This document shows positions 1,081 to 62,381 of a stretch of DNA of 64,000 nucleotides, piece by piece. The stretch is taken from contig OZ116701.1 in NCBI GenBank assembly GCA_964199315.1, forward strand, positions 4,526,001 through 4,590,000, in the 5' to 3' direction. The stretch is from Orbicella franksi. Taxonomy: Eukaryota. Position 1 is the first letter of the stretch, and each line of letters starts with the position of its first letter. Both the position numbers and the translations under genes were made by a program. Below the pieces are notes generated by a model, which was not told the origin of the DNA, ran no database searches, and saw nothing but the letters and a program-made list of their open reading frames with translations.

Positions 1081-1867
1081 TTAAAATGAAGACGATTGAG
1101 ATGAAAGAACCAAAGTTTTTTTTGTATGATATATTCAATTTATTTTAATTTTAACATCCTATCTCTAACCAAACCGAGTAAATTTGTAATCAGCACTTTT
1201 ATGCGATACTGTTTTGAACTTAAACCTTAGTTTGTGAAGATTCAAATGAAAGCTAGTCTGAAGTTCTTTTCTGGTTTATTATGTGATTGTACAAGGCGGC
1301 AGTTCTTATTTTTGACCGTGGGCGGGAAACTTGTTAGTGACCTTTCAAATGGAAAATGTTACTTTTTAGTGATACTGTTTTTATGTGAGCGAACTAGCAA
1401 GTTTTAACCCGTAAGAAGACCATTTATGTTAGAGCTATCAAGCAGTCACGTTATTCGTCCGATAATTTGCAAAACGGGTTCTTTCTTTTGTGCAATGTGG
1501 CGCCCTTTGGCGGAGAGATTTCGCTTGTAGTCAGTGCAAGCTTACAACGCAACTGCTCTACAACAGCAGTAGTTTGGACCACATTTGGACACAGTGCAGG
1601 AGTGGTGACGAAACACAGCCAAGCCTAGTTTGTGAGAATCTGTATATTCATCATAATTATCTGCCAGGGCAGGTTGCCTTTTATACACATGTAATGACTC
1701 AGTACAATCCCATGTTAGGTTTCGTATTTCCTTTGGTCCTTGCTGCCGTAATCTTTTCTCTGTACAGATGTGCTTGCAGTCTGGTTTCTCGCCACAGGTC
1801 CTAAAAGAAGACAAGACTTAGGTAACGATTATAAAACAGTCTGGTCATAAGAAAGGGCGTGTATGGG

Positions 1868-2335
1868 AGGGAGTTTACGTAGCCACGACGGCAACGCCGA
1901 GGACAACGTCGGCTTATCACTGTCAAAACTATTATAAAACTAAATCTGGAACACAGCGATAAATTTGAAATAGAAATTTACAAACTGATTAGCCGTCGTG
2001 TTTCACGTTCTCCAGACAACATAGAATTTGATCATTTCACGTTGTTGTTTTGCAGAGGACGGCAAAAAAATGCACTGAGAATAGACCAATTTCGATATAT
2101 TAAAATTCAGCCTGAAACAATAAAGCCCAGTACGAGGCTCTGGTGAATAACTACAGAGAGTTTGTGGGGTTTATTTCCCAGAGCCTCGTGCTGAGGTCTA
2201 TTGTGTTAGGCTGAATTTTAATATATCGAAATTGGCCTATTATCGCGCTCTTGTACAGCCAATGTCCTGTTCATTAAATCTTTTGTTCAGCGACGTTCCC
2301 GTTGCCGTTGCCGTCGTGGTTTTCTTAAACTCCCT
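1868..2335. mobile_element. MITE with AGGGAGTTT...AAACTCCCT termini (host of a nested insertion)
   Basis: Imperfect TIRs of about 40 bp: AGGGAGTTTACGTAGCCACGACGGCAACG versus CGTTGCCGTCGTGGTTTTCTTAAACTCCCT. Confidence 0.8.
2083..2238. mobile_element. Palindromic MITE nested inside the 1868-2335 element
   Basis: AGACCAATTTCGATATATTAAAATTCAGCCT pairs almost perfectly with AGGCTGAATTTTAATATATCGAAATTGGCCT; an internal IR CACGAGGCTCTGG/TACGAGGCTCTGG is also present; AT flanks both sides. Confidence 0.85.
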
Positions 2336-2693
2336 AATATATCTTAGAACGCGGTTGTTCCGTCGAAAACAAATGCAACGGACAGGAAACTTTACCCAGT
2401 CACTTGCCCATAAATAACCCCTTCAAATTTCTTGACCTTACTTTTTATTTAGGAATAACTATGCATCAAATTTCCCTACCAGTCGTGTCGTCGTCAGTCC
2501 TGTTTTATAACTTATTAGAACATTAGTTACCTTCTGACTGCGTATATAAGGCCTGGTCCGTTGCTGGGAATGGCTGCACACGTTGCCATGGCAATTTCAT
2601 CCAAGTAATTGTAAAAGTATGAGCGGAATCCTCTTCGCACACGGACGTGATCTGGGGAGAGAAAATGTCAGAACCTCTCGGAGTTGGTATTTA

Positions 2694-6738: not shown

Positions 6739-6940
6739 GGAAAATAGTTTATTTTCTGCCAAATAATCAAACTTATATCCCGGGAAATGATGATAGATGC
6801 GAATGCAGCCGTAACACTACTGGGAAACTTTTCCACCAGGACTCCTACTGGCACAAAGCAAAAGGCAAAAAAGAAATGGATTTAAAATATGATATACATG
6901 TAACGCTAAAAATACCTTTCAGTCTAAAAGTAATTATTGA

Positions 6941-9900
6941 TTATGTCTCTTTGAAACATTTTCCACACGAGCTACAAAAGTTGCTGGTTGGCGAACATTT
7001 CGTTGAACATTCCGAGCAAACCTTCCCAACAATATTTGTTTGTTCAGTGCCTGGAGCCACATTGTAAACATGCTCCTTTTCACTTGCTGTACAGTTTGGT
7101 CTTAGGCTACAGTTTTGTTGGTGCATGTACTCGACCATGGGGTAAGAGAAGCCTGGTGGCGAACCGTAGATAGGGTAGTGCCCAGACCTCATGGGGCCTT
7201 GATAAGGCGGTCGGGTTTGGCGAGCAATAAAGCCTGGATGCACGCCTGGGTTATAGTGCACTACAGGACTTTCAGGAGATTTCAGAGAAGCCATGGCCTT
7301 TTCGTGACTAGGTAGAACGCACTCTATAACTCTTAACACGTCCCCATGACAACCTTTTAAAATTAGTTCCAGTACACTTCGCTTCTGAGTTGGAAAGAGT
7401 CTGGTGAGGAGGTCTAGAGGATGCAGTCTTGCACGATAGCTGGCAATGTGATTTCCAGGACTCTTGAGTTGCTCGTCGGCGGTTTCATCAGCAGAAGCGC
7501 GGGAATCTTCTCTTTGCTTATCTTGATCGACCGGCTGTTGATATATCTGGCAGATGCTACCATTTGTTTCGCCATTTGTCTCGTCACTGTCATAAAACAC
7601 ACTATCATCTATGGCCTCGGGAGGGGAAGGATAAGATGATCCCACTTCTGAGAATTTGCGCTTTGATCCTACAATGATAAATACAAAGTTATAATGCAAT
7701 TGTTTACTAAATCATTGCAATCGAAATTAGTTTCTTTTCACAAAATCAAGTAATCAGTAAGGTGACGAGAATAAGGAAAATTATCAATTGGAGAATGTCG
7801 GGCTGATTGACGCAGGACTGAAAAATTAGAAACAGTTTGGGGTGGATCTCAACGGTTTCCAACATTTTTCAGTTCCCCCTCCTTTGTAGTATAGTGTGAA
7901 TATCTTCCGATCATTGACAAACTAAATATGGTCAATCTCGTGACTCAAAAAAGGTAACCATAACAACAGCAGAGCCCGTTTAACACCATTTGACTTTGCA
8001 TTAAGTGTTTATAACTCAAAAACAAAACCTTTGATCCCTGTTTTTTTCATGGAATTGTAGCACGCAATTTAAAAAAACAACCTTTTATCAAGTTTTTAAA
8101 AAAAATCATGGGAGGTGGTTCAAAAACCTCGAATAGCAGATTTGCACGATAGCGCAGGGGGCAGCCCCTGACGATACCGTCATTTGACTACAACTACCAG
8201 AATTCCTTTCGTTTTTTCTTTATTATTTAAATTTTGAATTCCCAGATGGGTTTAAATAACAATTGCCCTAATTAGCACGAGAAACAGAAAAACTGAAAGG
8301 ATTCCGGTATTATAGCCAAATGACGCCATCAAGCAAATCGCCTATCAATGTTTCTTTGCTGGAAAAGAACACTGAAAAACAAATAGATTCCATGTTGCCG
8401 GCGTCTGTTCAGTAATTGATCACAGAAGACGTCAAAATGTGGTATGAACATGAGTGACACACTTGGCTATCACCTCGTGTGCCACAACAACGTGGAATCT
8501 ATTTGTTTTATATAAGAAAGAAACAAAACAAACACTTAATGACGTCATGTATGCGTCTGTCCTCCAGTTGATCATGAGTAAGAGCAAGAGACGATGGACC
8601 AATCAAAATGCGAGAACTAATTTGACTTATTATATAAATAGTATTAACACTGTTAATACTGTTAAGTCTTTACAGAGCTGTTGATTTCTTTTTGAAAGAG
8701 TTGTGGTGATTGATGGCTTTCAAACGAACTTGTGAAAACTGTCAATCTAATTAAAATCGAATAGAGGGAGTAAGTTTCTAAAGGAACTGTGGTGCTGCTA
8801 ACTAAACTCGAGCTGTCTTGCCTTGTCTTCTGTTGAAACAGAAATTACTAAATGTTTGATCTATCAACGAAAATTGAGAAAATTTCCTTAACTGGGGTTG
8901 TGAGTCATAAAATGAAATAACTTTTTCATTCCAACAAAAACCGAAGATTGTTGAATATTGTATTGTATTCGGATAAGAGACTTCCTTGGTTGGGCATGTC
9001 TAGAAAACCAGCATAGCGAGTAGTGTACTACGATTATAGGAAGAGGCAAAACTCAGTATGGATCAACTCGATCGCGTATTTGCTCGCATCCCATTGGCTA
9101 AGATAAACAATGGTTGCTGTTCTTATCCAATAGGATGCAAATCAGCGAGTTTCTCCAGTCCGGTCGAGGTTTGTCCCGAAAGCGAATAAACGCGACCGCA
9201 AGCATTGCGAGAAGTGGCAAATAGTTCCCGATCAGCCTGAAAAGCACTTCGGTTAGCCTAAATGGCTCGCGGGCTGGCCTAAATAGTCCGCTATATAATG
9301 ATCATGAAGAGGGTAACATAAAGTTCTGTTTAGATTAGCCGCGACTGTTGGACACTATTCCCTGTTCGGCTGGCATGATTACAGCTATCAAAAAGCTCTT
9401 AAGGAAATGTAGGAAGAGATAAAAACGTTTGCTGAGCCGAAGCAAAAGGATAAGCGACTCTAAATCGGTCTGCAATAGCGCAGCCTGATGTAACAAGAAT
9501 TTCCAACCAAACACTCCAAAAAAACTGACAGCTAACCACAATGGATACAAATGTTGTTAGTAACTGTATAGATTTACATTTAGGAAAGTAAACACTTTTT
9601 AGAATGCCGCAGATTTTTTGTTTGCTAATCGAGAACACCTTTCAAACGCAAGTTCAATAGCGTGTTTTCCCAGCGCTTTCAGTCAGTGTCCGTTTGAGTC
9701 TAGCTTAAGACTTCTTAGACTTCCACACTTTTCTTCTTGAGAGCTAAAACAACGCTGTTATGAGAACTAAAAAAGATACGCTTTGAATATACACTTGGTA
9801 GATTGTGAAGATGCGAATCAAAGAAAAAGAACTCTGCAATCATTTAGTAAATATTGCTTTCCAATTTCTTTACAAATTGTTCCCATCCCAAACTGATCCG

Positions 9901-10404
9901 AGAGTAGCCGAGCTACCCTATACCCCATTTATAAAAGCAAGCGAAAAGTCGCCATGTTAGCTGAATTTTTTTAAGGAACTATTTAATTTTCTCACCTTGG
10001 CCTGATGAAAGTGAAGCGTGTTTGGCCCTTGCTTCAACCATGATATCCAGCTTATCTGGAGTCGTGTTGTTATTGTTTGTATCAACTTGTAACGTTGCCG
10101 GACAAATAATGTTTGAAAGTGACTCACTCGAAGGATGCGGTGACCTGTAAACAACACAAGCGGGTTCAACGCTAACATCATCTACAAACTGGCTTCTCGG
10201 CGGTTCGTCGTCATCTTCTCGCTTGAGCGCTATTTGCGCCGCCATAAGCCGCTGCCGTTCGATGATCAAGCTGCATTTTGAACATGAACAGTCTTTCCAC
10301 GGACACTCGTTCTTGTGTCCTTTCAATTTCTGCGTTATACCGTGATTCCGGCATCTCGCACAGCGCGGTCTCGGTTGAGAGCGACCGGTATTTTCATCGG
10401 ACAT
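6941..10404 (-). CDS. DMRT: DMRT-family transcription factor (DM + DMA domains) with C-terminal zinc ribbon; 2 exons, 378 aa
   Basis: Exon 1 10404-9996 (ATG in AACCATG context; DM domain CARCRNHG...GHK..C.W.DC.C.KC...ERQR.MAAQ; donor G|GTGAG). Exon 2 7668-6941 (acceptor TTATCATTGTAG|GA; DMA domain [34 protein letters not shown] at about 7423-7304). The phase-1 junction is in frame; total 1137 nt. Confidence 0.93.
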
Positions 10405-13400
10405 GGTTGTTCGAAACAGTTGGGTTTCCTCTCTTGGTACTTGCGACAGCTTGGACTAAAACTGTTAGTTTTTCAATTTGTGCTTTTCCAATTAATTACC
10501 GTCAAACAGTTGATATATCACCTCTGGTATTTCTACTGTAAATGAGTTCTATTGTTTGCGTTGCAATTGATTCGCTTCGTGATTGGAGGAAGTCGGATTA
10601 GCGCCATTTTCTTTCAGCAATAGCTTGGTGCTTTTCATTAGCTAGGTGCTTGTATTAGTAAGAACAAATCTATTTTTATGGTAATATGCAAACAACCCGA
10701 TAAAGTTATTCTTTCATTTTATTTTCTCTTTAGACCAACTGGATGTTGCGACTTATAGTTGTCTTGAGGCGAGGTCTAACCTATAGATTATAAAACTTTC
10801 ACAAGCAGAGTAACGATCAGTCGGTCAGAATAAAACGAAGATCTAAAACCGACTCTCTTAATTTTCTTGTCATTCTGTGTTTACCTTAAGCTTTCTTTCA
10901 ATTTGAATATAAATAGCGCTTCCTCTGGGTATTGCTTTTAAATATCAGAAAGATATTTTTATTCAAAAAATGCGACAGCTTTTAGACGGTGTCTTTGTGC
11001 GAAGAGTAATGACCGTCTGCCTTTTGTCTCTTCCACTCGCATTATTTCGCTGCTGACGGCAGACCTTTACTCCCTTCCACTTGTCTTTCAATATATAGTA
11101 AATGAACTTCACTTAGTTGCTGTCACTTAGGCTTTGTTTAATTTCCGTTCAATAGTGAACACGACCTACTTCAGCTTCAACTTCACTCGGAGATCACGCG
11201 CCATGTCACAAGAGCAACATTGAAGGAAAACAAAGGACTTACAGCCATATTAAAATCTTGTCCATGGCGTTATGTTTTCGGATAGTTTTTATCCCTTGAT
11301 GTATTCTTTGGCGCTGACAGCAAAAATTGAGGATAGCAATTCAATTCGTTCGGGTAAAAACACTATGCACACCTCACGCAATGTTAGTTGTTTGTTTGTT
11401 TGTTTTTTTCCACGATGTTTGAAGTTTTAAGTCCCTCCCTTGTGCCGTGAACAACGTGTCTTACACGCGTTAAAAATAGTGCAGCGGCTTGAAGTTACAA
11501 TCTTTATTGCATTATTTTTGAAGAGTGAAGACCTACGACGATACAAGTTTTCATCTAGACGAATAAAATCTATAAATACTCTTTTTAGAATACTTTCTAT
11601 ACTAATACTAGTTTGCTTGAAGATAGGACGTGACTACAATACTAATGTACTTCTGTCTACAAGATTAACTGAAAGAGAAAGTTGCTTTTATCGTAAAACG
11701 CGCGCTCCGCTGAATGCCATTGCTAGAAAAAGTCCATAACTCATAACAGCTTGTCTATGTTATAGTCGCCGGTATTGTCCAATATTACAGTATAGATTAG
11801 AGAGTTTTCAATTATCTCTTGCATTATTTTGTTGATTTTACCGTTGCTCAACCGTGTTTTACAAAGCTCTTTTAAACAAGCCATTCAGTTTTAGGAGATA
11901 AGAAAAGCATTGACAACAATACCTTTTTATACCAAATAACTGCATTAAATCGGCTGGACTACATTTTCGAGATCCTGAGCTGATTCATCTGTATTAGTTA
12001 ATGCGAATTTATGATTATTACTTTATGCTATTTTATTATATATTCATCTATTTACCAATATTTATGTTAACCCTTTAACGTGCCGACTCAAGTAGTCAAT
12101 GTTTAGTTCCTCCTTACTGTTTCAAGATGTTATCAGGTAGGCAGGTGATGAGATAAATTCATTAACTGATGTCTTGGTGTAGTCACCAAATTCTCCCAAC
12201 ACGGTCATTGAAAGAAATAATTGGCAATCAGAGGGAGAAATGAAGTTCTGATCTCATGACTACAAGAGTTAACACGTGAACCTAAGAGACTCGAACATTT
12301 ACCTTGAAATAGAATATTTCCCAGGGATTTTACACTACACTGTATACTGAATTACCTTCATCAGTAGATTACATCATGAATTTACTCCAAGGCGAATGCC
12401 CGGGTTCATTTCACGGTTTATATTTATTAAAATAAAGAAACGACAGAATGTCGCCAAAAAAATATTTCACAAAACTAAATATATTACAAAGCCTTTTTAA
12501 AGTCATTTATGGTGTCACGAATTATTTTCACTACTGTTAATTTTACCCAACGGCAAAAGAAAAAAACTACATCTACGCTAATTACCTATCAAGCTACAAG
12601 ATCTTACAGAAGCAGGTGTCTGGTCGGCCTGTCCATAGCTCTCTAAGACAGGCAGCTTACAATGTCTTGGACCGGCCTGTCTATAGCTCGGCCTAATCAA
12701 CTATTTCTAAGACAGGCACGCTAACTACCACGGTGCTATTTACTATTCTAGTTGAGTAAGAAAATAGTTTTATGGTACAAGCTCGCATTTTTGTCCAATT
12801 AACGTTTCGGGTTATTTACATGCACTTTACTGTTCGTTCCATAAAGGCTTTTTTACATGTTGGCTTCGTAAAACATAAGAAAAGATTTAATTTTGTATAA
12901 TTAAATGGCAAAAAATGAAATCAGCCACTGCAATTTGTATGTACATCTCAAAAAAGACTACCACTAATGCTCTCTTTCCATAGCATTTTCTACTCCCATC
13001 AGTCAGGTACTTCAGCTGACATATTACGGGTAGGAGGGTCGTTATTCTTACTACAACGTCTTGAAAGCCTTGAATATTTAACGCGGTCTACCGTGCATTC
13101 TGAAGACCATCACTGAACAGGGTATAGCTAATCATATCATCTCTATTCCTATGATTTCATTTCTTTGCCACATAAGACTGAAGTAAAAAAAGCTTAAAAA
13201 TTATAATACAATGTTGTAGAAATATATCTCTAAGAAGCATTATGAAGAAGGTACTTGAGTACTTCATATGGGAAAGAATGATATTTACATGTTCTACAAT
13301 TCGTACTATCTTTAGGCAGCTTGGCTGATGGAACTGGATCGGAGCTCGAGTGAAAGGCAAATTCAGAAGTCGCTCTGATACACTCGAGTGTATATTGTTT

Positions 13401-13638
13401 TAGTCATATTTTAGCGTATAAGACTCCTAACTTACAGCACTGACAAGTCTTCAGTCTACAATGCCATGCTGTTTCAGCGTTAGCTATTCATGTTACTTAC
13501 GTCACTAGAGGGTAACATCAAAAATAACATTCGTGTTTCTAATAGCATCTATTCTATTAATTTTTATCCAGTCTTACTGGGTACCTCAACTACTGCATCT
13601 TCGTATCTCAATTTCATATCGTCTGGATAGAACTAACT

Positions 13639-16600
13639 TCAAGCTTTTTCGTCAGCCTCACTTTTTGGAGAACCGCGGGGAGAGAGGGCCGGTGGGCTGC
13701 GGTTATTTCTTGGTAGGACCCGGTCCCCGGAAAGGACTCGTCCAGGCGTGCTCATGGTCATTAAGGCGGCAGTTGCCGACCGCATACTTTGACTGTACCG
13801 CATGTCTTCAAGGTGGGGTATTTTTGCCAAAGCTGGAATCGTCGACATCGGTAGCGAGTTGTGCTCTGAGATGGACGGTATCAGCGGAGTTGGCAGGTCC
13901 GGGTTTTGCCGCTTTGAGGGATCTTTCAGTACAGGCATGGGAGCAGTTCCCGGATAATAAACACATCCGGGGCATTGGCCACTGGCACACTTGGATGCCG
14001 CATGGTACTCGACAGCGCTTAATGGTATGCTGTGAGGAATTGTGGGAGAGAGAGGTGAGAAAGCCGAATAGCTAGAAGGTGGCGGAGGGCCTGGGAAGAG
14101 GCCGCGTGGTACACTGGCAAGTATTTGCCCTCGGGCGAGGGCTTCCTCATGACTTGGAAGAACGGTCTCTATTGTTTGAATCACATCACCTCCGCACCCC
14201 TTTAATATCAGCTCCAGAACGTTTCGTTTCTGCTCCGGGAAGAGCCGTATTAAGATGTTCATGTACCTTGAATGGTCCGAAGTTGACATCACTTTGCCGT
14301 GTTCGCCATTGTTCAGAGAAACCTTCTCATTTCTTTGCCGTTTTGTGTCTGGTGACATTCTAGGCCGTCGCTCGTCCTCTTCTTCGTCTCGTTCACGTTT
14401 CCACCTATTGGGCAAAGCTTCACCGCTGTTTTCCATTTGAAATTCTGAAAAGAAAAATGATGATTATTTGAGAGCTATTATCAGAAACTACTGGCGAAGA
14501 CACAACGAAATATTCTCGGCTATTACCAATAATCGAATCAATTTTAACAAATGGCCATATTTGCGAAATATAGTTTATATCATCCTCTCAAAATATCCAA
14601 CATTTCTGAAACGTTACACGCCAAGGTTTAACTTAAAACAAGACGTTTTATCTGTTGCTTAAAACTGACCACCCTTGAAGTTGTCAGGTTGCTCGGAGAT
14701 TGAACGTAGTTTGTCTCTGAACATGGCATGGGTTGGCAAAATAAAGCTAAATTGAGCAGAAAAGCGTCGAACGTTCTTCCTTCAAACGATTGTGATAAAT
14801 GATGGTAATAAAAAATACAGCCTACAAGATTTCCAATCTACTTGTTAAATTAAAGCAAGCAAAAGCTTGAACTAAGCCATCCATTTGAATTCTAATCTTT
14901 TACCGTCTGATAAGATCTTCATAATACCGGATAAAAAAAATATCCAAAACTAGACTACAATGACCAATGACTCATTCACATACAGAGTAATATCGGACTA
15001 CAGAAAGATTACCTTCAGTGCACTAAGATTGGCTCTTTTTGGTTTCGTGCAAGTCTGCGGAGGGCGCTTTTGCTTTCGTGACTGAACGCGATCCGATGTT
15101 AAATGACGATTAAGTTTCCTTTTTAATATATGCAAATGACCAGTATAGGCTTACAAGAAAAGGCTAAATCCACGGTCCCATTATTTATGTTTTAAATGTC
15201 TTTGAGAACTAAGATGGAACAGTTTGAGATCTATTAATTTTCTCTCAAGTTTAAACTCTCTTGCGGTCCATCTCCATTTTGAGCCAGCTTGACACAGAAT
15301 ACAATTTCCAAAAAAATAATTTGTCTAAATCCTTTGGGAAATAACTCAAACTCTTACAGATTACAATTTTGGCCTATTCTAGATGCTAGCATTTAATTTC
15401 AAGAAGTTAGATAGAACCTGGTTTTTCTCCTTACTTGCTTCACCCATGCAACCAACCAACTAAACAAAAGGTAGCTTTAAATTACCTGCCTTGACGTGTG
15501 GCAAGATTCTGTTTAAGTCTTTTGTAAGCACTGTTGGGGTAAATGCTCAGCTAGAACTTCCTGATTCTAAAGACATTTTGTCAGAATGCGCGGTGAAAGT
15601 AGGCAGTATTTTGGAGACCACTGGCAGCGTTTACAAAAAGGCGGTCTACAATAAACAATGCAAAAACTGAACATTTTTTTCATTAGGATTGACACACTGC
15701 AAGCGGTGTTTTTCTGCCATTGATTCAAAAAGCCTGTCAATTTAAAACACTTCCCTTTGGTTTAGAGACGAAAAGAAATCAGTGCAAGTTCGATAAAACC
15801 CAGCGGAAAAAAAAAAAAGAGATTTAAACAGTCGAGTTAATGTAATAACCAACAAAAATGGTGCAAAGAGGGGAAATCGGTTATTAACTTAATGGTTGAA
15901 AAAGGATAATTTTCATATGAATTATAAAATTGGAACTTGTTCCAAAGTCCAAACTTATAACTGGCAGTCATTCGTCCATAGCTTAACACTCAAATGGTTT
16001 TCTATGGCTTAAACATCAACCAGCTTTAAACTAGTAGCCTTATTGAGGTAATGAGGTAATTAGCGATAAAATTGATAAAGAAATCGCAGCTGGCCTTAAG
16101 GCCAAGAAGCAACTATAAGCTCTATGGTTCAGCCTCCGCATGAATGAATGCTTTCACTAAATCAACGACTGAGTTCACCGCAAAGCCTGATGCAGGCTAA
16201 GTTGTTTTTCTTTTGAAGGAATATCGTATGCAAAAATAAGGTTCATTTTCCGCACGACAGAGCAAATACTCGAATGGAACATACCGTATTCCCTGACGAC
16301 CGCTTACAGGTAACCAAGCTCAATATGCTGACCCACTGTTTTGAGGAAATTGGAAGTGATAGCAATAGAAATTAAAACGTAAACCAAAGAATTTCTTCCC
16401 TCAAATTTCTACCGCATATAGTTTGACCTTTATCCTTTTGTAGTCGAGATTATCTAAAATTTTGCTCAATGTCGCTTTGTCTTTTGCCTTGTGGTCAGTA
16501 CGAGTGCAGATGTACCGTGCTAAACGTCAACAACATTCCGTTCTACATAATAACAATAATAATAAAAATACATTAAAGCGTTCTCTGGTTAACATATTTA

Positions 16601-19600
16601 AAAACTATAATGATAATAATAATAACTACAACAACAATTTTCTGTAAAATAATTCGCTTTCTAATTTTTAACAGTCAGCTTCGAACAACTTTGGCACAGT
16701 TACTGAACATTATTCTGTTGGCTTCCAGACAAACTTCATATAGTCTCATAAAATCAATATCATGTGTCCTTATTGAGAAAACATCGCACAATCTTTAATA
16801 ACAATATATTAGTCGACCATTTTGTTTTTCACCCTGGGTTCAAATCTTCACTACAGGCAACATCTTGCTATAATTACTTCAGTTTAACTTCTCGACAATA
16901 AGAACTTATAAATGGATACAGACCTTTAAAATATCAGTTGTACTCCCGCCAAGTATATGGCTCAAACCGAGGAAACCCTTCGAAATAACCAGATTAAGCT
17001 GTTGATTTTCCATTTCGCCTTATGTCAGTTATTTTGACATTTTATTGTTAACTCTCTATGGAAAACGGCGACGAGGTGTATTAAAATCAAAACTATTTAA
17101 CAATTCACACTCACCAACGGTGAAATAAACGGTTTTGTGGCTGTTACAGGACGGCTCCTTGTCTTAAAATGATGTCTCGATCCAGCTTAATGAGGCCGAT
17201 CGAGCAGAGCGGTGACTGCTCCAGTCTGGCAGAGCAAGTTCAACTCGGTACCAGATAAACTTGATAACAATCATGAAATACCACGATCTCTGCGAGTGTT
17301 TTTTTCTTTTTTTTTTTTTTACACTTTAATGCAATAACTCAGTAGGACCATTCTCACCACCGGCAATTGTTTTCAAGTAAACATGATGCCCTTGAAATTT
17401 TCGGCCCCGTGATTGGCTCCGCAGAAGCATCTGCATGTAACGGCATTAATTTCTTATAATTGTAAATAAAGAACAACGTGGCTTCACTGTCCGTTTCTCT
17501 GTCGGCTTCACTGAGTCTCAGTCGCGGTTAAACTTTTTTGTGGGCTTCAGCTGTCTCGCGATTAAAGGTCAAAGTGAGGTTTAGATCACATGTGCCTGTC
17601 ATAAATTGAAACTTTCCGAGAGGTTCGTTAACCAGCTATAAAGAAACTTTAGGAACGTGTTTTAAATAAGACACTTGCAGCACGTGTTGGAAACAAGGCC
17701 GTTTGCACAGTGTATTGTTAAAAGTTTAACAATTTTTCAGTTTGACTCTTAAATATAGATCGAAGATTAAAGATGTTTTCCTTTTTGCAGCTTTCCCCCA
17801 GTTACATTTAAAAGACAGTCTATGTCAAAATGTATCTTGGAATCCTGTTTTTGATATGATATAAATCTTACAAACAAAATACCTCTAAATTCCTACCGGT
17901 AAAAAATGTGATGTGAACTTTAATTCACGTTAAAATCTTTAAGAGATTGATAAAAATGGAGAGTGCAACTGAAGATGTATCTTTTAGAAAAAATGATCAA
18001 TGGCTGATTGAATAGCATAAAGCAGGCTTCTAACTGAACTTATTCACAGAGCAACAGCCAAAAATAGATTAAGTACCTGAAGCTGCTTAGAAAATAAACA
18101 CAAAACTTCCCACGGTTTATAAATAAAACCATAAAAGACTGTGAAATAAAAACATCGCGGTTGAGACATAAACACAGGTTTCTATTTTCAGGGGATCAGA
18201 GTATAAACATGCAACACTTCTTAACCCATAATGCACTTCACTGAACGTTACCAGTTGTTTCTGTTAGTCTTCAAAATGTGGCACGTGTTTTTGGTTTGCA
18301 GTTTTTGAAACGTTTTACCAGAAATACGCACAGGTATTTTAAACTAAGTACTTCCATAGATGCAGACAAACGAATCTTTCTTATCGATGTCCTTCTGAAA
18401 TCAGAACTACTTATCCAAGAAAGGAGATAAATTTACATATTATATAGCCGCAAGAACCATAAATGCAAATGTCTATGTCGATACAGTGTTTTATTTTATA
18501 GACAAACAGTTCTCAAATTTGTGATTACCTCGCTCAGTGTGTCACTCGAACGTCTTGGGAAAAAAAAAATCAGTGTTTTCGTATTATTTTTAAGATATTA
18601 GTCCAGATAAAATCTCAACTTCATTTACCGCAGTACTTTGACTACTATGTTTGTGTATACATCACTCGCTCTTTTCAAAATACATCGGTTATTAATAAAC
18701 GCTTTATTAGGACTAAAATTTCTGTCCGTGATTTTTTCATCTTTACTAGTTGTACTCTATCTGTTCACATAAGTTAACTGAGGAATATTGATGTGAGCGC
18801 TTCGACAAAAAGCAAAAATTAAGTTGGAACTTTCCAATTTTTAACAAGCTACAGTTAGATTTGAACAAATATGTTCATATAAAAAGATGATTGCTTTCCT
18901 TCTCCAACAAAATCAATCAAAAGTAACACCAGTGCATTTTGTTAAAATTTTCTCGATTTCTAACTGTGTGCCTAGTTTTTGTGCTGACTGAGTTTGAATA
19001 CTAAATTTCGGCTATGCTCAGACAGGCAATTTTTTCAAACTCCAACACTTTTGCTCATATGAGGATACTTGATTGGAAATGTTTTGTTTACACATGCTTT
19101 CTATTTACAAATAAACAAATAGAGAGCAACTGCTTTAGACGACTAAGTATGGTGACAGTTTAACTATCTTAAAATCAATTACAGCCCGAAGGCTGACGAA
19201 TGTTCGTACTATTCTTGCGTTACTAAGACGGCGATAAGCTTTCTTAGAAATTAACTCAACTGACCATCCAAAGTGTACTATTTTTTGTGAATGTGAACTG
19301 TAGTTTTTCAGCCATTCATAAACGCAGCACTGATCGATAGAAGCACGGAAATAAACCAATGTACATTGTATAGATTATAGACTTCCGCATGAGACTCATG
19401 GCTCAAATCAGCCTAGAACAGTTCAACATGTTATTATAACTTAGCCGCAGGCATATTGAAGCTAACCTCCCATTAACGCTTTAAACAAAGCCAGGGCAAG
19501 CCAAGACTTCACTAGTGCCGTTTTCGTGCCGAATGTGCGCGCGTACAAACCCCGGAGCCAATCAAAAGATTGCAAGAGCATTAAGCATTCCAAATGTTTT

Positions 19601-20255
19601 CCACCCAGTTGGAAACTTGGGCCTGACTTAAATTCCATTCGAAAAGAACGATTTTTCCTATTTGGGACGTGAAGGAAAAGGCGGCTAAAATAATAAGCAG
19701 TTTATCAAGCTTACCTTCGTTTGCACTACTTGTAGGAGATTCAAACTCATTGCTGACTTCGTCGTTTGGCGAACTTGATCGCGAAGATAAACTTGCGCTT
19801 CTCTGAGTGATTTGACCTTCTCGCGGAGATGTTGGCGAAGGAGGGATTATTCTTGATGCCTTGTGCATATTTGGATTAAAACACAACTGCATCGAACCAT
19901 AAGAAAGATGGCTCGCCGCCTCGTCGCTTTCTTGCTGTCTTCTAAGCGCCACTTGCGCGGCCATTACTCTTTGTCTCTCGGCTATAAGATTGCAATCAGA
20001 GCATGCACAATCTCGCCATTTGCAAAATCGTTTGTGTCCTTTGAGAATAGAGATGACGCCGTGGTTTCTGCAACGAGCGCACTTTGGTGAACGTTGTGTT
20101 ATGGACCCCATTGGAGGCATCGGCGATGACTTGATTTCAGTTGAAGAGGGCTGCAATAAAAATAACATTACGTTAGCTTACCCAGTTAAATTCCGAGTCA
20201 ATCTCACCGTACTAGTGGGTCGAGTTGAAGCGACCTCGAGGACTTCAGCGGACAT
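13639..20255 (-). CDS. DMRT: DMRT-family transcription factor, DMRTA-like (DM + DMA domains); 3 exons, 429 aa
   Basis: Exon 1 20255-20208 ([16 protein letters not shown], donor |GTGAG), then a 57-nt intron. Exon 2 20150-19715 (canonical DM domain [54 protein letters not shown], donor G|GTAAG). Exon 3 14444-13639 (acceptor TTTTTCTTTTCAG|AA; DMA domain at about 14268-14149, then SAFSPL). Phases 0 and 1 are consistent; 1290 nt. Exon 1 is less certain than exons 2-3. Confidence 0.92.
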
Positions 20256-24399: not shown

Positions 24400-25694
24400 C
24401 ATGCATCGCATCTAGAGCAAATAAAATACTACTAGTATTTCTACGAGTTTCAATCTCGCACACTGTCACTTTAAATTTGGTGTCGTAGCTCAAAATTCCT
24501 TGACTGCAACAAACGTCCAGCTTTTGAATGGTAAGCTCGACTTTTCCCTGAATGTTACTCTAGAGATTAAATTCCTCTTTATCTTAGTTCAGTTCTCTCA
24601 TACTCCTAGTCACTTTATTATGCAGACGCTGGTGTTGATTACCAGTTTTTGTGTACAGCCAGGCTGATGAAGTCTGTACCTTAAAATATTTCGGTACTTG
24701 AATCCTGAGGAACAAACCTTGAACTCCCATGCTTTGATCAGGCGCTTATTTGTTGCAATATAAATGCATTTGCTGTCAAGCAGACATGTTACCCAGCAGA
24801 ATTGCTGGAAGATGTGCATCGCGAATAAGTGTGCATTGTGTACGGCAGTCAAGAAAAGCAATTTATATTTCTAGCTGGCGACTAAAACAGTTAATGCAGT
24901 CCAGTACTATGCACTGACGGAGAAATTAAATGCTCACCATAAAGGAGCTCTCCCAGTTATAAGTTTAAAATACTGAAACATTACAGAATTGAAGAGACAA
25001 CAACAAGCTTAATCAACACTAAAAATTACCTTCCTCATTAATCTACAAGAGAGTGAAAATCATGCTCAAAGAAGGGTACTTACTTTGCCACCAGAGATGT
25101 GGTACATGCTTGCTCGCGTGAATGTCAAGAGTTATTCAAAATGATTTGCCGACAGTTTATCCAAGATAATGAAAACAGAGTAATTACACTATTACTTCAA
25201 CTGCAGGACAATCGGTCTTAAATAAGTTTAGGTGACTGGTGGTGCATCTTAACCTCTCAGTTTCGCTGTCGTAAAATTTTTGTTCACCATCCAGCTCTTT
25301 GCAATATAAGCCCGCCATTATATAGGCAATTCTAGAAACTGTGCGCGCCCTCACCCAAATCAATCACTGACGTTATGTGACACTAGCACGAAAAGTCGAC
25401 CTTTTGATCTTAAAACAACTGAAAATGAGTTTAAAGATACTAATTGGATAAAGCAGACAGATTAGGCGATAAGTTGAAGACGCAGACCGGAATTCCAAGA
25501 ACAATAACTGTTATTGACCTGTTGCTATCGTATTGTAAATTGTCTCTTCTAAGTTCGTCTGCCACGCCGGCGATAATTCGCCCATAGTTTATCACTCGTG
25601 TTTTGCCGCGAGACAGGACACCAAACTCAGCTATAGAGTAATTTAGCAAGTAAATTAATTTACTTACTATGGGAAAATCGTCCGAATCAGCCAT
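24400..25694 (-). pseudogene. Possible decayed multi-exon coding remnant of unknown family
   Basis: An ATG micro-exon MADSDDFPI|GTAAGT (25694-25668) is followed by protein-like frames interrupted by stops (MAGLYCKELDGEQKFYDSETERLRC...; ...GKVELTIQKLDVCCSQGILSYDTKFKVTV...). No family recognised. Confidence 0.25.
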
Positions 25695-30823: not shown

Positions 30824-30895
30824 CATTGCGGAACTGGTCGCTGTGTCAGCCGAGGCTTCATTAGCAGATTGTGATGTTCCCTCTTCAGCAGCCAT
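30824..30895 (-). CDS. Orphan candidate first coding exon (MAAEEGTSQSANEASADTATSSAM, phase 0)
   Basis: ATG in GACTATGG context, 24 open codons, strong donor ATG|GTAAGG, GC-richer promoter-like sequence upstream. The downstream partner exon is not established. Confidence 0.4.
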
Positions 30896-61436: not shown

Positions 61437-62381
61437 ATTCGCCTTTATCGCACAGCAGCCATCTTGGATTGACGTCATGTACTTTTGACACCAATGCGAG
61501 GCCACGCGTGTAAAGTCAGCTTCCGGCGATCGAGGAGACAAGGCGATCATCTGCAATCATGTCCAACGGAGATCACTGTTGCGTGCCGCAATGTAAAAAT
61601 AATCGCGCTAGAAATATTCCAAATCATACCTTTCACCAATTTCCCAGTGATGAAGCCATTCGAAAGTAGTGGGTTGTCAAAATACGGCGAGACGTGGGCA
61701 AAAGTGTCCAGGTAAGTTGGTTAGGTTATCGATGTCATTGTTGCGCACATGTATTTACATTAATTATTATGATCTGGTCCATCTACAGATAACAAACAGC
61801 ACAAGAGTATGTTCTGTAGACTTTAAGGAAGCGGATTTTCAGACAACTTTAACAGGGAAGCGTGTTCTGGAGAAGCATGCAGTTCCGAGTATTTTTTGCT
61901 GGTCAAGATCACCCAGGAAAAGAAAATCTCCGACAAAGCGAGAACCACCGCGTGCACGAGTGCGATTGTTTGATGTAAGCGTGCCATCGTCCCCTGTCAC
62001 TGTGACAGGTACATATTGTTGTCGATATTTCTTTAAACATTCCTTGGTTAAAATCGTAAAATAATCAGAAGTATTTTTATGTTTTTCATTTTAATCCATA
62101 GCATCAACTTTTGGCCAAGCTTCTGGTGAGGAAAGTTCTATGGAGGTCCAACCGGAACTGTCATCCTCTCCTGTTGTTGTAGACTTCTCGGAGCCAATAT
62201 ACACTGTCACTGTCACAGGTAAATATTGTTGTCGGTATGTCCACCAGATTGCAGTACCAAAACTCTGAAGAAATCAAAGTACTCGCTGACTCAGCCATGA
62301 TGTTTCAACACGCGTGGCCTCGCTTTCATGCGAAAAATGGTGACGTTGCATCCAACATGGCGGACTGTGATTAAGGCGAAT
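61437..62381. mobile_element. Internally deleted TIR DNA transposon carrying a THAP gene (superfamily undecided: Harbinger, P or Kolobok)
   Basis: Left ATTCGCCTTTATCGCACAGCAGCCATCTTGGAT...GCGAGGCCACGCGTGT matches the reverse complement of the right end, ATTCGCCTTAATCACAGTCCGCCATGTTGGAT...GCGAGGCCACGCGTGT. No transposase catalytic domain is visible. Confidence 0.7.
61559..62218 (+). pseudogene. Disabled THAP-domain gene, 3 exons
   Basis: Exons 61559-61711, 61789-62008 and 62102-62218 (GT-AG, phases 0 and 1) give MSNGDHCCVPQCKNN...FHQFPSDEAIRK*W...RVCSVDF...AVPSIF. THAP hallmarks are present, but with TAG at 61667-61669 and the zinc-ligand His replaced by Asp. Confidence 0.85.

Follow-up and report, generated by a model that had tools for sequence, protein, structure and literature searches.

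A same-strand pair of DMRT genes in the stony coral Orbicella franksi: a probable old tandem duplication with mosaic divergence of the copies

Two genes of the DMRT (DM-domain) transcription factor family, here called gene A and gene B, lie head to tail on the minus strand of a 64-kb stretch of the genome of the stony coral Orbicella franksi (assembly GCA_964199315.1, contig OZ116701.1, positions 4,526,001 to 4,590,000). This stretch, the window, is part of a genome of 497 Mb in 805 contigs, contains no N along its whole length, and provides the numbering used below. A six-frame motif scan of the 64 kb finds exactly two DM motifs and exactly two DMA motifs. The DM domain (Pfam PF00751; cut-off 27) is matched in the open reading frames (ORFs) 19581-20168(-) and 9979-10404(-), with 85.7 and 80.3 bits respectively, and the DMA domain (PF03474; cut-off 23) in ORFs 13639-14436(-) and 6941-7699(-), with 58.5 and 62.5 bits. 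Both genes are therefore DMRT genes by their above-threshold PF00751 matches, and both belong to the DMA-containing subgroup of the family (DMRT3, DMRTA, 93B and 99B, and cnidarian DMRT A-H). Both also agree with the strict zinc-ligand expression C-x2-C-x2-H-x8-H-x3-C-x4-C-x-C-x2-C, the intertwined CCHC/HCCC pattern. The best named protein matches come from stony corals, namely Oculina patagonica (86%), Acropora (77%) and Porites (77%).

Structure and transcripts of the two genes

The stop codon of gene A (13639) and the ATG of gene B (10404) are separated by 3,234 bp, which bears out an earlier note, made from the letters of the window alone, that described two same-strand DM+DMA genes about 3.2 kb apart. 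The span given in that note, 6941-20255, correctly takes in gene B and the DM and DMA exons of gene A but does not contain the whole of gene A, the first coding exons of which reach out to 40.3 kb. The sequence features that it listed as common to the pair, a DMA extension with LPSHE and a downstream motif reading VEYH...C in A and VEYM...C in B, are present and conserved in the orthologues of each gene. In gene A and gene B alike, the DM and DMA exons are divided by a phase-1 intron with GT..AG borders.

Gene A is predicted to use several promoters and to extend over at least 27 kb, with three alternative first coding exons, the DM exon, the phase-1 intron, the DMA exon and a long 3' untranslated region (3'UTR). 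Alternative first coding exons 1a (MEVTDEQSTHKETKEGSADQFTV, 40269..40337, minus strand, donor GTAAGA) and 1b (MAAEEGTSQSANEASADTATSSAM, 30824..30895, minus strand, donor GTAAGG) were located by tblastn with the N-termini of Oculina isoform X2 (86% over 22 amino acids, E 7e-9) and isoform X1 (71% over 24 amino acids, E 5e-5). A possible third, exon 1c (MADSDDFPI, 25668..25694, minus strand, donor GTAAGT), is a weak match, aligning with the start of Oculina isoform X4, MADLYDFPK, at 75% over 8 amino acids with an E value of 7.7 that is not significant alone, with equal length and a clean donor. Each of the three begins with ATG and ends in phase 0 before GTAAG, and the orthologues of gene A have variable N-termini of ~9-24 amino acids.

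The DM exon of gene A (19715..20150, minus strand) follows an acceptor reading ttattgcag/CCC at 20150 and carries the DM domain at ~19911-20096; an internal ATG (MPPMGS) near 20120 would provide the start for isoforms with a non-coding first exon. The phase-1 intron of 5,270 bp (14445..19714, minus strand) runs from the donor GAAG/GTAAGC at 19715/19714 to the acceptor ...TTTCAG/AA at 14445/14444, and the resulting junction, ...SSANE^EFQMEN, agrees with orthologous mRNA-derived proteins. The coding part of the DMA exon (13639..14444, minus strand) has the DMA domain at ~14125-14268 and the stop at 13639-13641, its product being 77-95% identical to coral orthologues. A contig of 1,792 nt from polyA RNA-seq (depth 98) covers 11539-12699 and continues upstream, and 0.80-0.99 of the sampled words of 11540-14444 are present in RNA runs, several of them polyA, so the last exon of gene A probably carries a 3'UTR of ~2.1 kb (11539..13638, minus strand), as pieced together from assembled contigs rather than read from one molecule. 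The few raw reads in this region have their first mate on the plus strand, as for minus-strand genes. Gene A is highly conserved, and its RNA is widely detected.

Gene B is a compact two-exon gene that encodes 378 amino acids with a DM domain, a DMA domain and a C-terminal zinc ribbon. The coding part of exon 1 (9996..10404, minus strand) starts with the ATG at 10404 and holds the DM domain at ~10189-10377. The 5'UTR extends to at least 10590, with RNA contigs over 9995-10261 and 10367-10590, and the sequence upstream is conserved with other corals out to 10555-11152. The phase-1 intron of 2,327 bp (7669..9995, minus strand; donor CAAG/GTGAGA at 9996/9995, acceptor ...TTGTAG/GA at 7669/7668) is seen spliced in RNA: one polyA RNA-seq contig (X5) and one raw read (X24) each skip 2,327 bases between minus-strand GT..AG borders. 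The coding part of exon 2 (6941..7668, minus strand) contains the DMA domain at ~7280-7423, the zinc ribbon CxxC-x10-CxxC at ~6950-7030 and the stop at 6941-6943. The ribbon scores 16.7 bits against Zn_Ribbon_1, below the Pfam cut-off, and is conserved in the Nematostella, Actinia, Montipora and octocoral orthologues. The gene model as a whole aligns end to end with proteins of Montipora and Acropora (380 amino acids), with Nematostella DMRT C (371 amino acids) and with Actinia orthologues. Gene B is weakly expressed; the raw reads on exon 2 are of low depth, with their first mate on the plus strand as fits minus-strand RNA. From the ends reached by the assembled contigs, 11539 for the 3'UTR of A and at least 10590 for the 5'UTR of B, the two transcripts probably lie less than 1 kb apart.

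Constraint on gene B is indicated by its DMA exon, where the ratio of nonsynonymous to synonymous substitution rates (dN/dS) is 0.18 against the closest relative (locus L028 of another assembly), a value that argues for purifying selection and that stems from this one comparison, as dS is saturated (>1) beyond it. The DM-coding stretch of gene B is spanned entirely, with zero differences, by an RNA contig from another sample (X1), and its unusual DM sequence is thus not an assembly error.

Around the exons of gene B three further observations were made. Within its intron, at ~8100-8700, RNA contig depth rises to 750-1190 against ~5 in the flanks, with loose ends at ~8378-8441 and ~8583-8632, and the stretch looks like a dispersed, transcribed repeat. 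At another coral locus, L029, the intron of B holds an element of the long interspersed nuclear element type with endonuclease and reverse transcriptase ORFs (L029:6217-9747). Downstream of the stop codon of the present gene, a 34-base piece at 6787-6820 occurs in raw polyA reads with unrelated sequence on both sides (up to 19 reads per side) and carries G>A at 6811, mainly in reads oriented opposite to gene B. Either this fragment also forms part of an abundant transcript encoded elsewhere, or it is a micro-exon belonging to a plus-strand gene.

Orthology and age of the two gene types

Trees were built with IQ-TREE (LG+C20) from concatenated DM and DMA segments of ~110 columns. The rows comprised the coral's own eight DM+DMA paralogues, cnidarian proteins with names, and sequences chosen to represent the hits of a profile search against 1.8 billion proteins; Nematostella A was represented by its longest isoform. 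In the tree of 134 rows, the A clade, the B clade and the A+B grouping receive supports of 99/95, 99/91 and 98/90, respectively, and in that of 49 rows 99/93, 99/96 and 93/87. A tree of 62 rows, to which octocoral A types and medusozoans were added, gives 98/89, 100/99 and 97/87, with the last grouping resolved as (B,(medusozoa, A)). Gene A falls with Nematostella DMRT A (K4P607) and gene B with Nematostella DMRT C (K4NS90), the best named match of each, in well-supported clades that leave the other paralogues of the coral's own genome outside. By sequence, gene A is accordingly assigned as the orthologue of Nematostella DMRT A, of the AmDM1 type, and gene B as that of Nematostella DMRT C. These placements, together with the gene models, give two coral DMRT genes a precise structure and orthology, and gene A is of a type proposed to be Y-linked in a gonochoric coral.

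With 93-98% support, A and B are placed as each other's closest paralogues, sister clades within a group that is made up of cnidarian sequences only. The NvDMRT D clade comes next to A+B, though weakly supported; the other big clades of the tree are, by their named representatives, those of Dmrt99B/DMRTA, Dmrt93B and DMRT3. The possibility that the two genes fall in distant DMRT clades, which the earlier note had named as a reason to give up their kinship, is thereby answered in favour of the pair. Since they adjoin on one strand and are nearest kin among the paralogues in the concatenated DM+DMA trees, they have the properties of tandem duplicates.

Some of the kinship signals are less specific than they first appeared. 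Genome-wide there are 13 DM and 9 DMA matches, which combine to form eight DM+DMA genes; Nematostella likewise has eight genes with DMA, NvDMRT A-H (PMC4433094). At least five of the eight have the phase-1 intron between DM and DMA (A, B and the three further paralogues for which close reference proteins exist), and a fourth besides A and B probably has it too. The intron noted earlier as shared between A and B is consequently real, but it is not diagnostic and says nothing specific about these two genes. The LPSHE extension, by comparison, is common to A, B and medusozoan proteins only. Elsewhere in the same genome, a DM-only gene is located 7 kb upstream of a DM+DMA gene (C14, 22.097-22.110 Mb; loci L009/L013/L018), and two closely related DM+DMA genes are located 60 kb apart (C15, 7.447-7.511 Mb; L006/L008/L016/L019); local duplication seems to be largely behind the growth of the DMRT family in this genome.

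The age of the split is bounded by the octocorals. A-type proteins are found in Dendronephthya (P0375) and Paramuricea (P0377), and a B-type protein with the same ribbon in Paramuricea (P0330), so the split into A and B predates crown Anthozoa. A hexacoral-only A+B clade, equivalent to duplication after the octocoral split, is rejected by the approximately unbiased (AU) test (p=0.004).

This age bears directly on the suggestion that B is a young, lineage-specific duplicate of A and hence a candidate for a new sex determiner resembling DMY or DM-W, an analogy raised in the earlier note. The suggestion has in its favour that B adjoins A and that its DM domain carries unusual substitutions (ITQK for VVSY, KGHKN for KGHKR and CPW for CRW). 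Opposed to it are one-to-one B orthologues in Acropora, Montipora, Nematostella, Actinia and octocorals, an identity of only ~40% between the A and B proteins and the purifying selection on B. A recent origin of B, already refuted by the orthologues across anthozoans, is thus very improbable, and the comparison with a young derived copy beside its parent is abandoned.

Linkage, neighbouring genes and origin of the pair

The order A-DMA exon, B-DM, B-DMA on one strand recurs at loci L024, L025/L026 and L030 of other assemblies with a spacing of ~3-5 kb, the B protein of L025/L026 falling in a 90% cluster of Acropora RefSeq proteins. In a fourth other assembly A-DMA is followed by B-DMA, again on one strand. 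In addition, RefSeq A and B proteins lie on equal-length records in three Acropora species and in Montipora foliosa, and RNA and DNA runs from several studies contain the A/B stretch. At L028 the locus ends at the contig end and the A-B order is not readable, and at L029 there is no A exon within 10 kb of B. That the linkage is an assembly artefact, or that the region is collapsed or misjoined, is a notion to which hardly any probability attaches, given a window free of N, the same order in independent assemblies from four other sources and the runs that contain the stretch; the microsynteny comparison proposed in the earlier note has in this respect come out on the side of a true linkage.

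Downstream of gene B lies a small Cys-rich gene, gene X (1545..2643, minus strand, exons seen at 2530-2643 and 1545-1802), which was delimited by tblastn and a codon-patterned DNA alignment. Its last exon reads ...TWDCTESLHVYKRQPALADNY...CGPNYCCCRAVAL and then a stop codon, and it has no Pfam family. Gene X aligns to a coral (L024), an octocoral (L031) and Nematostella (L027), and over 65 amino acids it is 86% identical to a 147-amino-acid Nematostella gene beside NvDmrtA. In this coral, at L024 and at the octocoral locus it follows directly on the downstream side of B, whereas the Nematostella copy neighbours NvDmrtA and is oriented divergently to it. This pattern agrees with A, B and X having once adjoined one another and having been separated later in the anemone lineage. 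On the larger scale, NvDmrtA, C and D share one chromosome, as do A, B and the D orthologue in this coral; the NvDMRT D record has the same length as the NvDMRT A / C record, and the coral D orthologue is found at 30.6 Mb of C4, the contig that also carries the window.

Taken as a whole, the history that we consider likely is an old tandem duplication, kept in stony corals, with subsequent mosaic divergence of A and B. One ancestral cnidarian gene with DM, DMA and zinc ribbon would have been duplicated before crown Anthozoa to yield A and B, most likely in tandem; stony corals would have kept the A-B arrangement, while sea anemones would have broken it by rearrangement within the chromosome. 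The old tandem duplication proposed in the earlier note is in this way upheld by the sister clades, the head-to-tail arrangement, the presence of both types in octocorals and the AU test.

A number of observations weigh against this history. In Nematostella, A and C are 7.0 Mb apart on OW051991.1 (9.08-9.10 Mb and 16.10 Mb), in Actinia A and B are on different scaffolds, and at octocoral locus L031 the 7.4 kb before B and the 10 kb after it contain no A-type exon, so that tight A-B adjacency is seen in stony corals only. With regard to the trees, the grouping of A with B appears to rest mostly on the DMA domain and the LPSHE extension, within an alignment of ~110 columns, and a tree of the DM domain by itself leaves B unresolved and puts A with the D clade and medusozoans. 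The best tree takes the form (B,(medusozoa,A)), but with p=0.065 the alternative of a clade of anthozoan A+B is not rejected, so that the split of A and B may or may not predate Medusozoa. Lastly, the 3'UTR and alternative first exons of gene A derive from assembled contigs and homology, not from single molecules.

The first three of these observations can also be explained by secondary juxtaposition, in which the anthozoan ancestor already had A and B scattered along one chromosome and a rearrangement in the stony-coral stem brought them together. The 7.0-Mb gap in Nematostella, the separate scaffolds in Actinia and the lack of an A-type gene in the fetched flanks of L031 would all follow from it directly. 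Sister paralogues in the same orientation 3-5 kb apart, however, are the signature of tandem duplication, and the location of gene X beside B in corals and octocoral but beside A in Nematostella is simplest if A, B and X were once neighbours. Moreover, anemone chromosomes show extensive internal reshuffling as a known pattern, which would account for the dispersal there. Secondary juxtaposition is on balance unlikely, though it is the strongest of the competing explanations, and an old tandem duplication remains the preferred account.

Mosaic divergence, known systems and possible function

The earlier description of the pair as one canonical and one derived gene captures part of their divergence. 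The A protein of the window is 79% identical to that of Acropora, the B protein 56%, and over three coral comparisons dN is 0.108-0.248 for A and 0.198-0.322 for B, which is 1.3-2.1 times higher in B. Between the window and Nematostella the identities are 54% for A and 53% for B, and between Actinia and Nematostella 57% and 56%. Within Scleractinia B thus evolves faster than A, by a factor of about two, with equal divergence (~50-55%) at coral-anemone depth. The 50-residue DM core of A is identical in this coral and Acropora, while that of B differs from Acropora B at ~10 positions. In the window B reads ITQK where VVSY is usual, KGHKN for KGHKR and CPW for C(R/Q)W, with all eight zinc ligands retained; the CPW change is also present in the L024 species. 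Separately, the B protein of the L030 species was seen to have NHDEFSF in place of NHGVVSY in its DM domain. The B-type DM domain appears to be unusually free to change in some stony corals.

Architecture points the other way. The C-terminal ribbon CxxC-x9-11-CxxC occurs in six of the eight DM+DMA proteins of this coral (B, L015, L016, L018, L019 and L020) and also in an A-like relative from Hydra (P0380), and is missing from A in the hexacorals and octocorals compared. It looks like an ancestral feature of cnidarian DMRT proteins; among those of Nematostella a zinc-ribbon domain has been reported for NvDMRT F alone (PMC4433094). A would then have retained the ancestral DM sequence and lost the ribbon, and B would have retained the ribbon and altered the DM recognition region, speeding up within stony corals and most in this lineage. 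On these sequences A is best described as conservative in sequence with a domain lost, and B as conservative in architecture with its DM region changed, and because A lost the ribbon whereas B kept it but changed its DM domain, "canonical versus derived" is too simple. Of the earlier contrast, the faster rate and extra DM changes of B in Scleractinia stand, but not an overall asymmetry, divergence being equal at coral-anemone depth and the ribbon kept by B. The pair offers a clean case of divergence between duplicated transcription factors, in which one copy lost a domain and the other altered the region that reads DNA.

Nematostella DMRT A resembles gene A in its DM and DMA domains with the extension, its large DM-DMA intron, the absence of a C-terminal ribbon and several 5' isoforms. 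The DM cores of the two differ at 3 of 50 positions, but identity over the whole proteins is only ~54%, and NvDMRT A is not beside DMRT C. NvDMRT C resembles gene B in having two exons, DM and DMA with the extension, VEY..C and a CxxC-x10-CxxC ribbon ending ...CGKCFKE. It differs from gene B in lying 7 Mb from NvDMRT A, in an identity of ~53% and in the lineage-specific changes of the coral B DM domain, CPW being shared with L024. Expression of NvDmrt A continues over the larval and juvenile stages (PMC4433094). The same paper places coral AmDM1 nearest to NvDmrt A, and the AmDM1 label of gene A follows from that statement, not from the AmDM1 sequence; the type goes back to Miller et al. 2003, as cited in PMC4433094 and PMC10194864.

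In Goniopora djiboutiensis the gene GddmrtC is reported to be sperm-specific and located on a putative Y chromosome (PMC10194864). It is described as most similar to AmDM1 and has DM and DMA exons split by a 6.2-kb intron, compared to 5.3 kb in gene A (PMC10194864); its orthology to gene A (set LC704528-30) would follow from that description, not from sequence. The same study groups GddmrtC with DMRT1 (PMC10194864), whereas the A clade is not so placed in the present trees. In a weak DM-only tree to which DMRT1, dmd and mab-3-like proteins were added, DMRT1 groups apart from A/B, and the resolution does not suffice to position A/B among the DMA-less classes.

The vertebrate DMRT1-DMRT3-DMRT2 cluster is similar to A-B in being a set of DM-domain genes physically clustered through local duplication. 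The likeness ends there: A and B are sisters in a cnidarian-only group, and DMRT3, Dmrt93B and Dmrt99B/DMRTA form separate clades. The A-B pair would consequently have clustered independently of the vertebrate genes and is not their homologue, contrary to the relevance that the earlier note had seen. With this, two tempting but wrong links are removed, one to the vertebrate DMRT1-3-2 cluster and the other to young sex-determining duplicates. Literature searches returned no description of this tandem pair or of any cnidarian DMRT cluster; a candidate report of such a cluster, PMC10735318, has DMRT in its reference list only.

From their family, the A and B proteins should act as zinc-dependent, sequence-specific DNA-binding regulators; the specificity of B may have been affected by the changes in its recognition-helix region and by KGHKN and CPW. 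A further proposal is that the pair is kept together as one regulatory unit and forms the core of an ancient anthozoan locus of sexual or gametogenic control, in which B, its DM domain altered, would work with A or against it at DNA sites common to both. The transcript of A seems to end less than 1 kb from the conserved promoter of B, which would allow read-through or interference, and the sexual part of the proposal comes from the reported Y-linkage of an AmDM1-type gene in Goniopora. We regard it as a long shot, somewhat less probable even than the secondary juxtaposition weighed above.

In terms of novelty, both genes belong to known types, and several coral genomes in RefSeq already carry annotations for them. 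What is new is modest, namely that the pairing has been conserved and that the copies have diverged in a mosaic way, and is useful but unsurprising as gene-family history. These findings define a microsyntenic pair kept by stony corals and broken in Nematostella, with a split dated before crown Anthozoa. As for the rest of the window, Pfam gave nothing for gene X and, on the other long ORFs, only a sub-threshold THAP fragment (22.1 bits against a cut-off of 23.9). The ORF concerned, at 61669-62064 on the plus strand, is probably transposon-derived.

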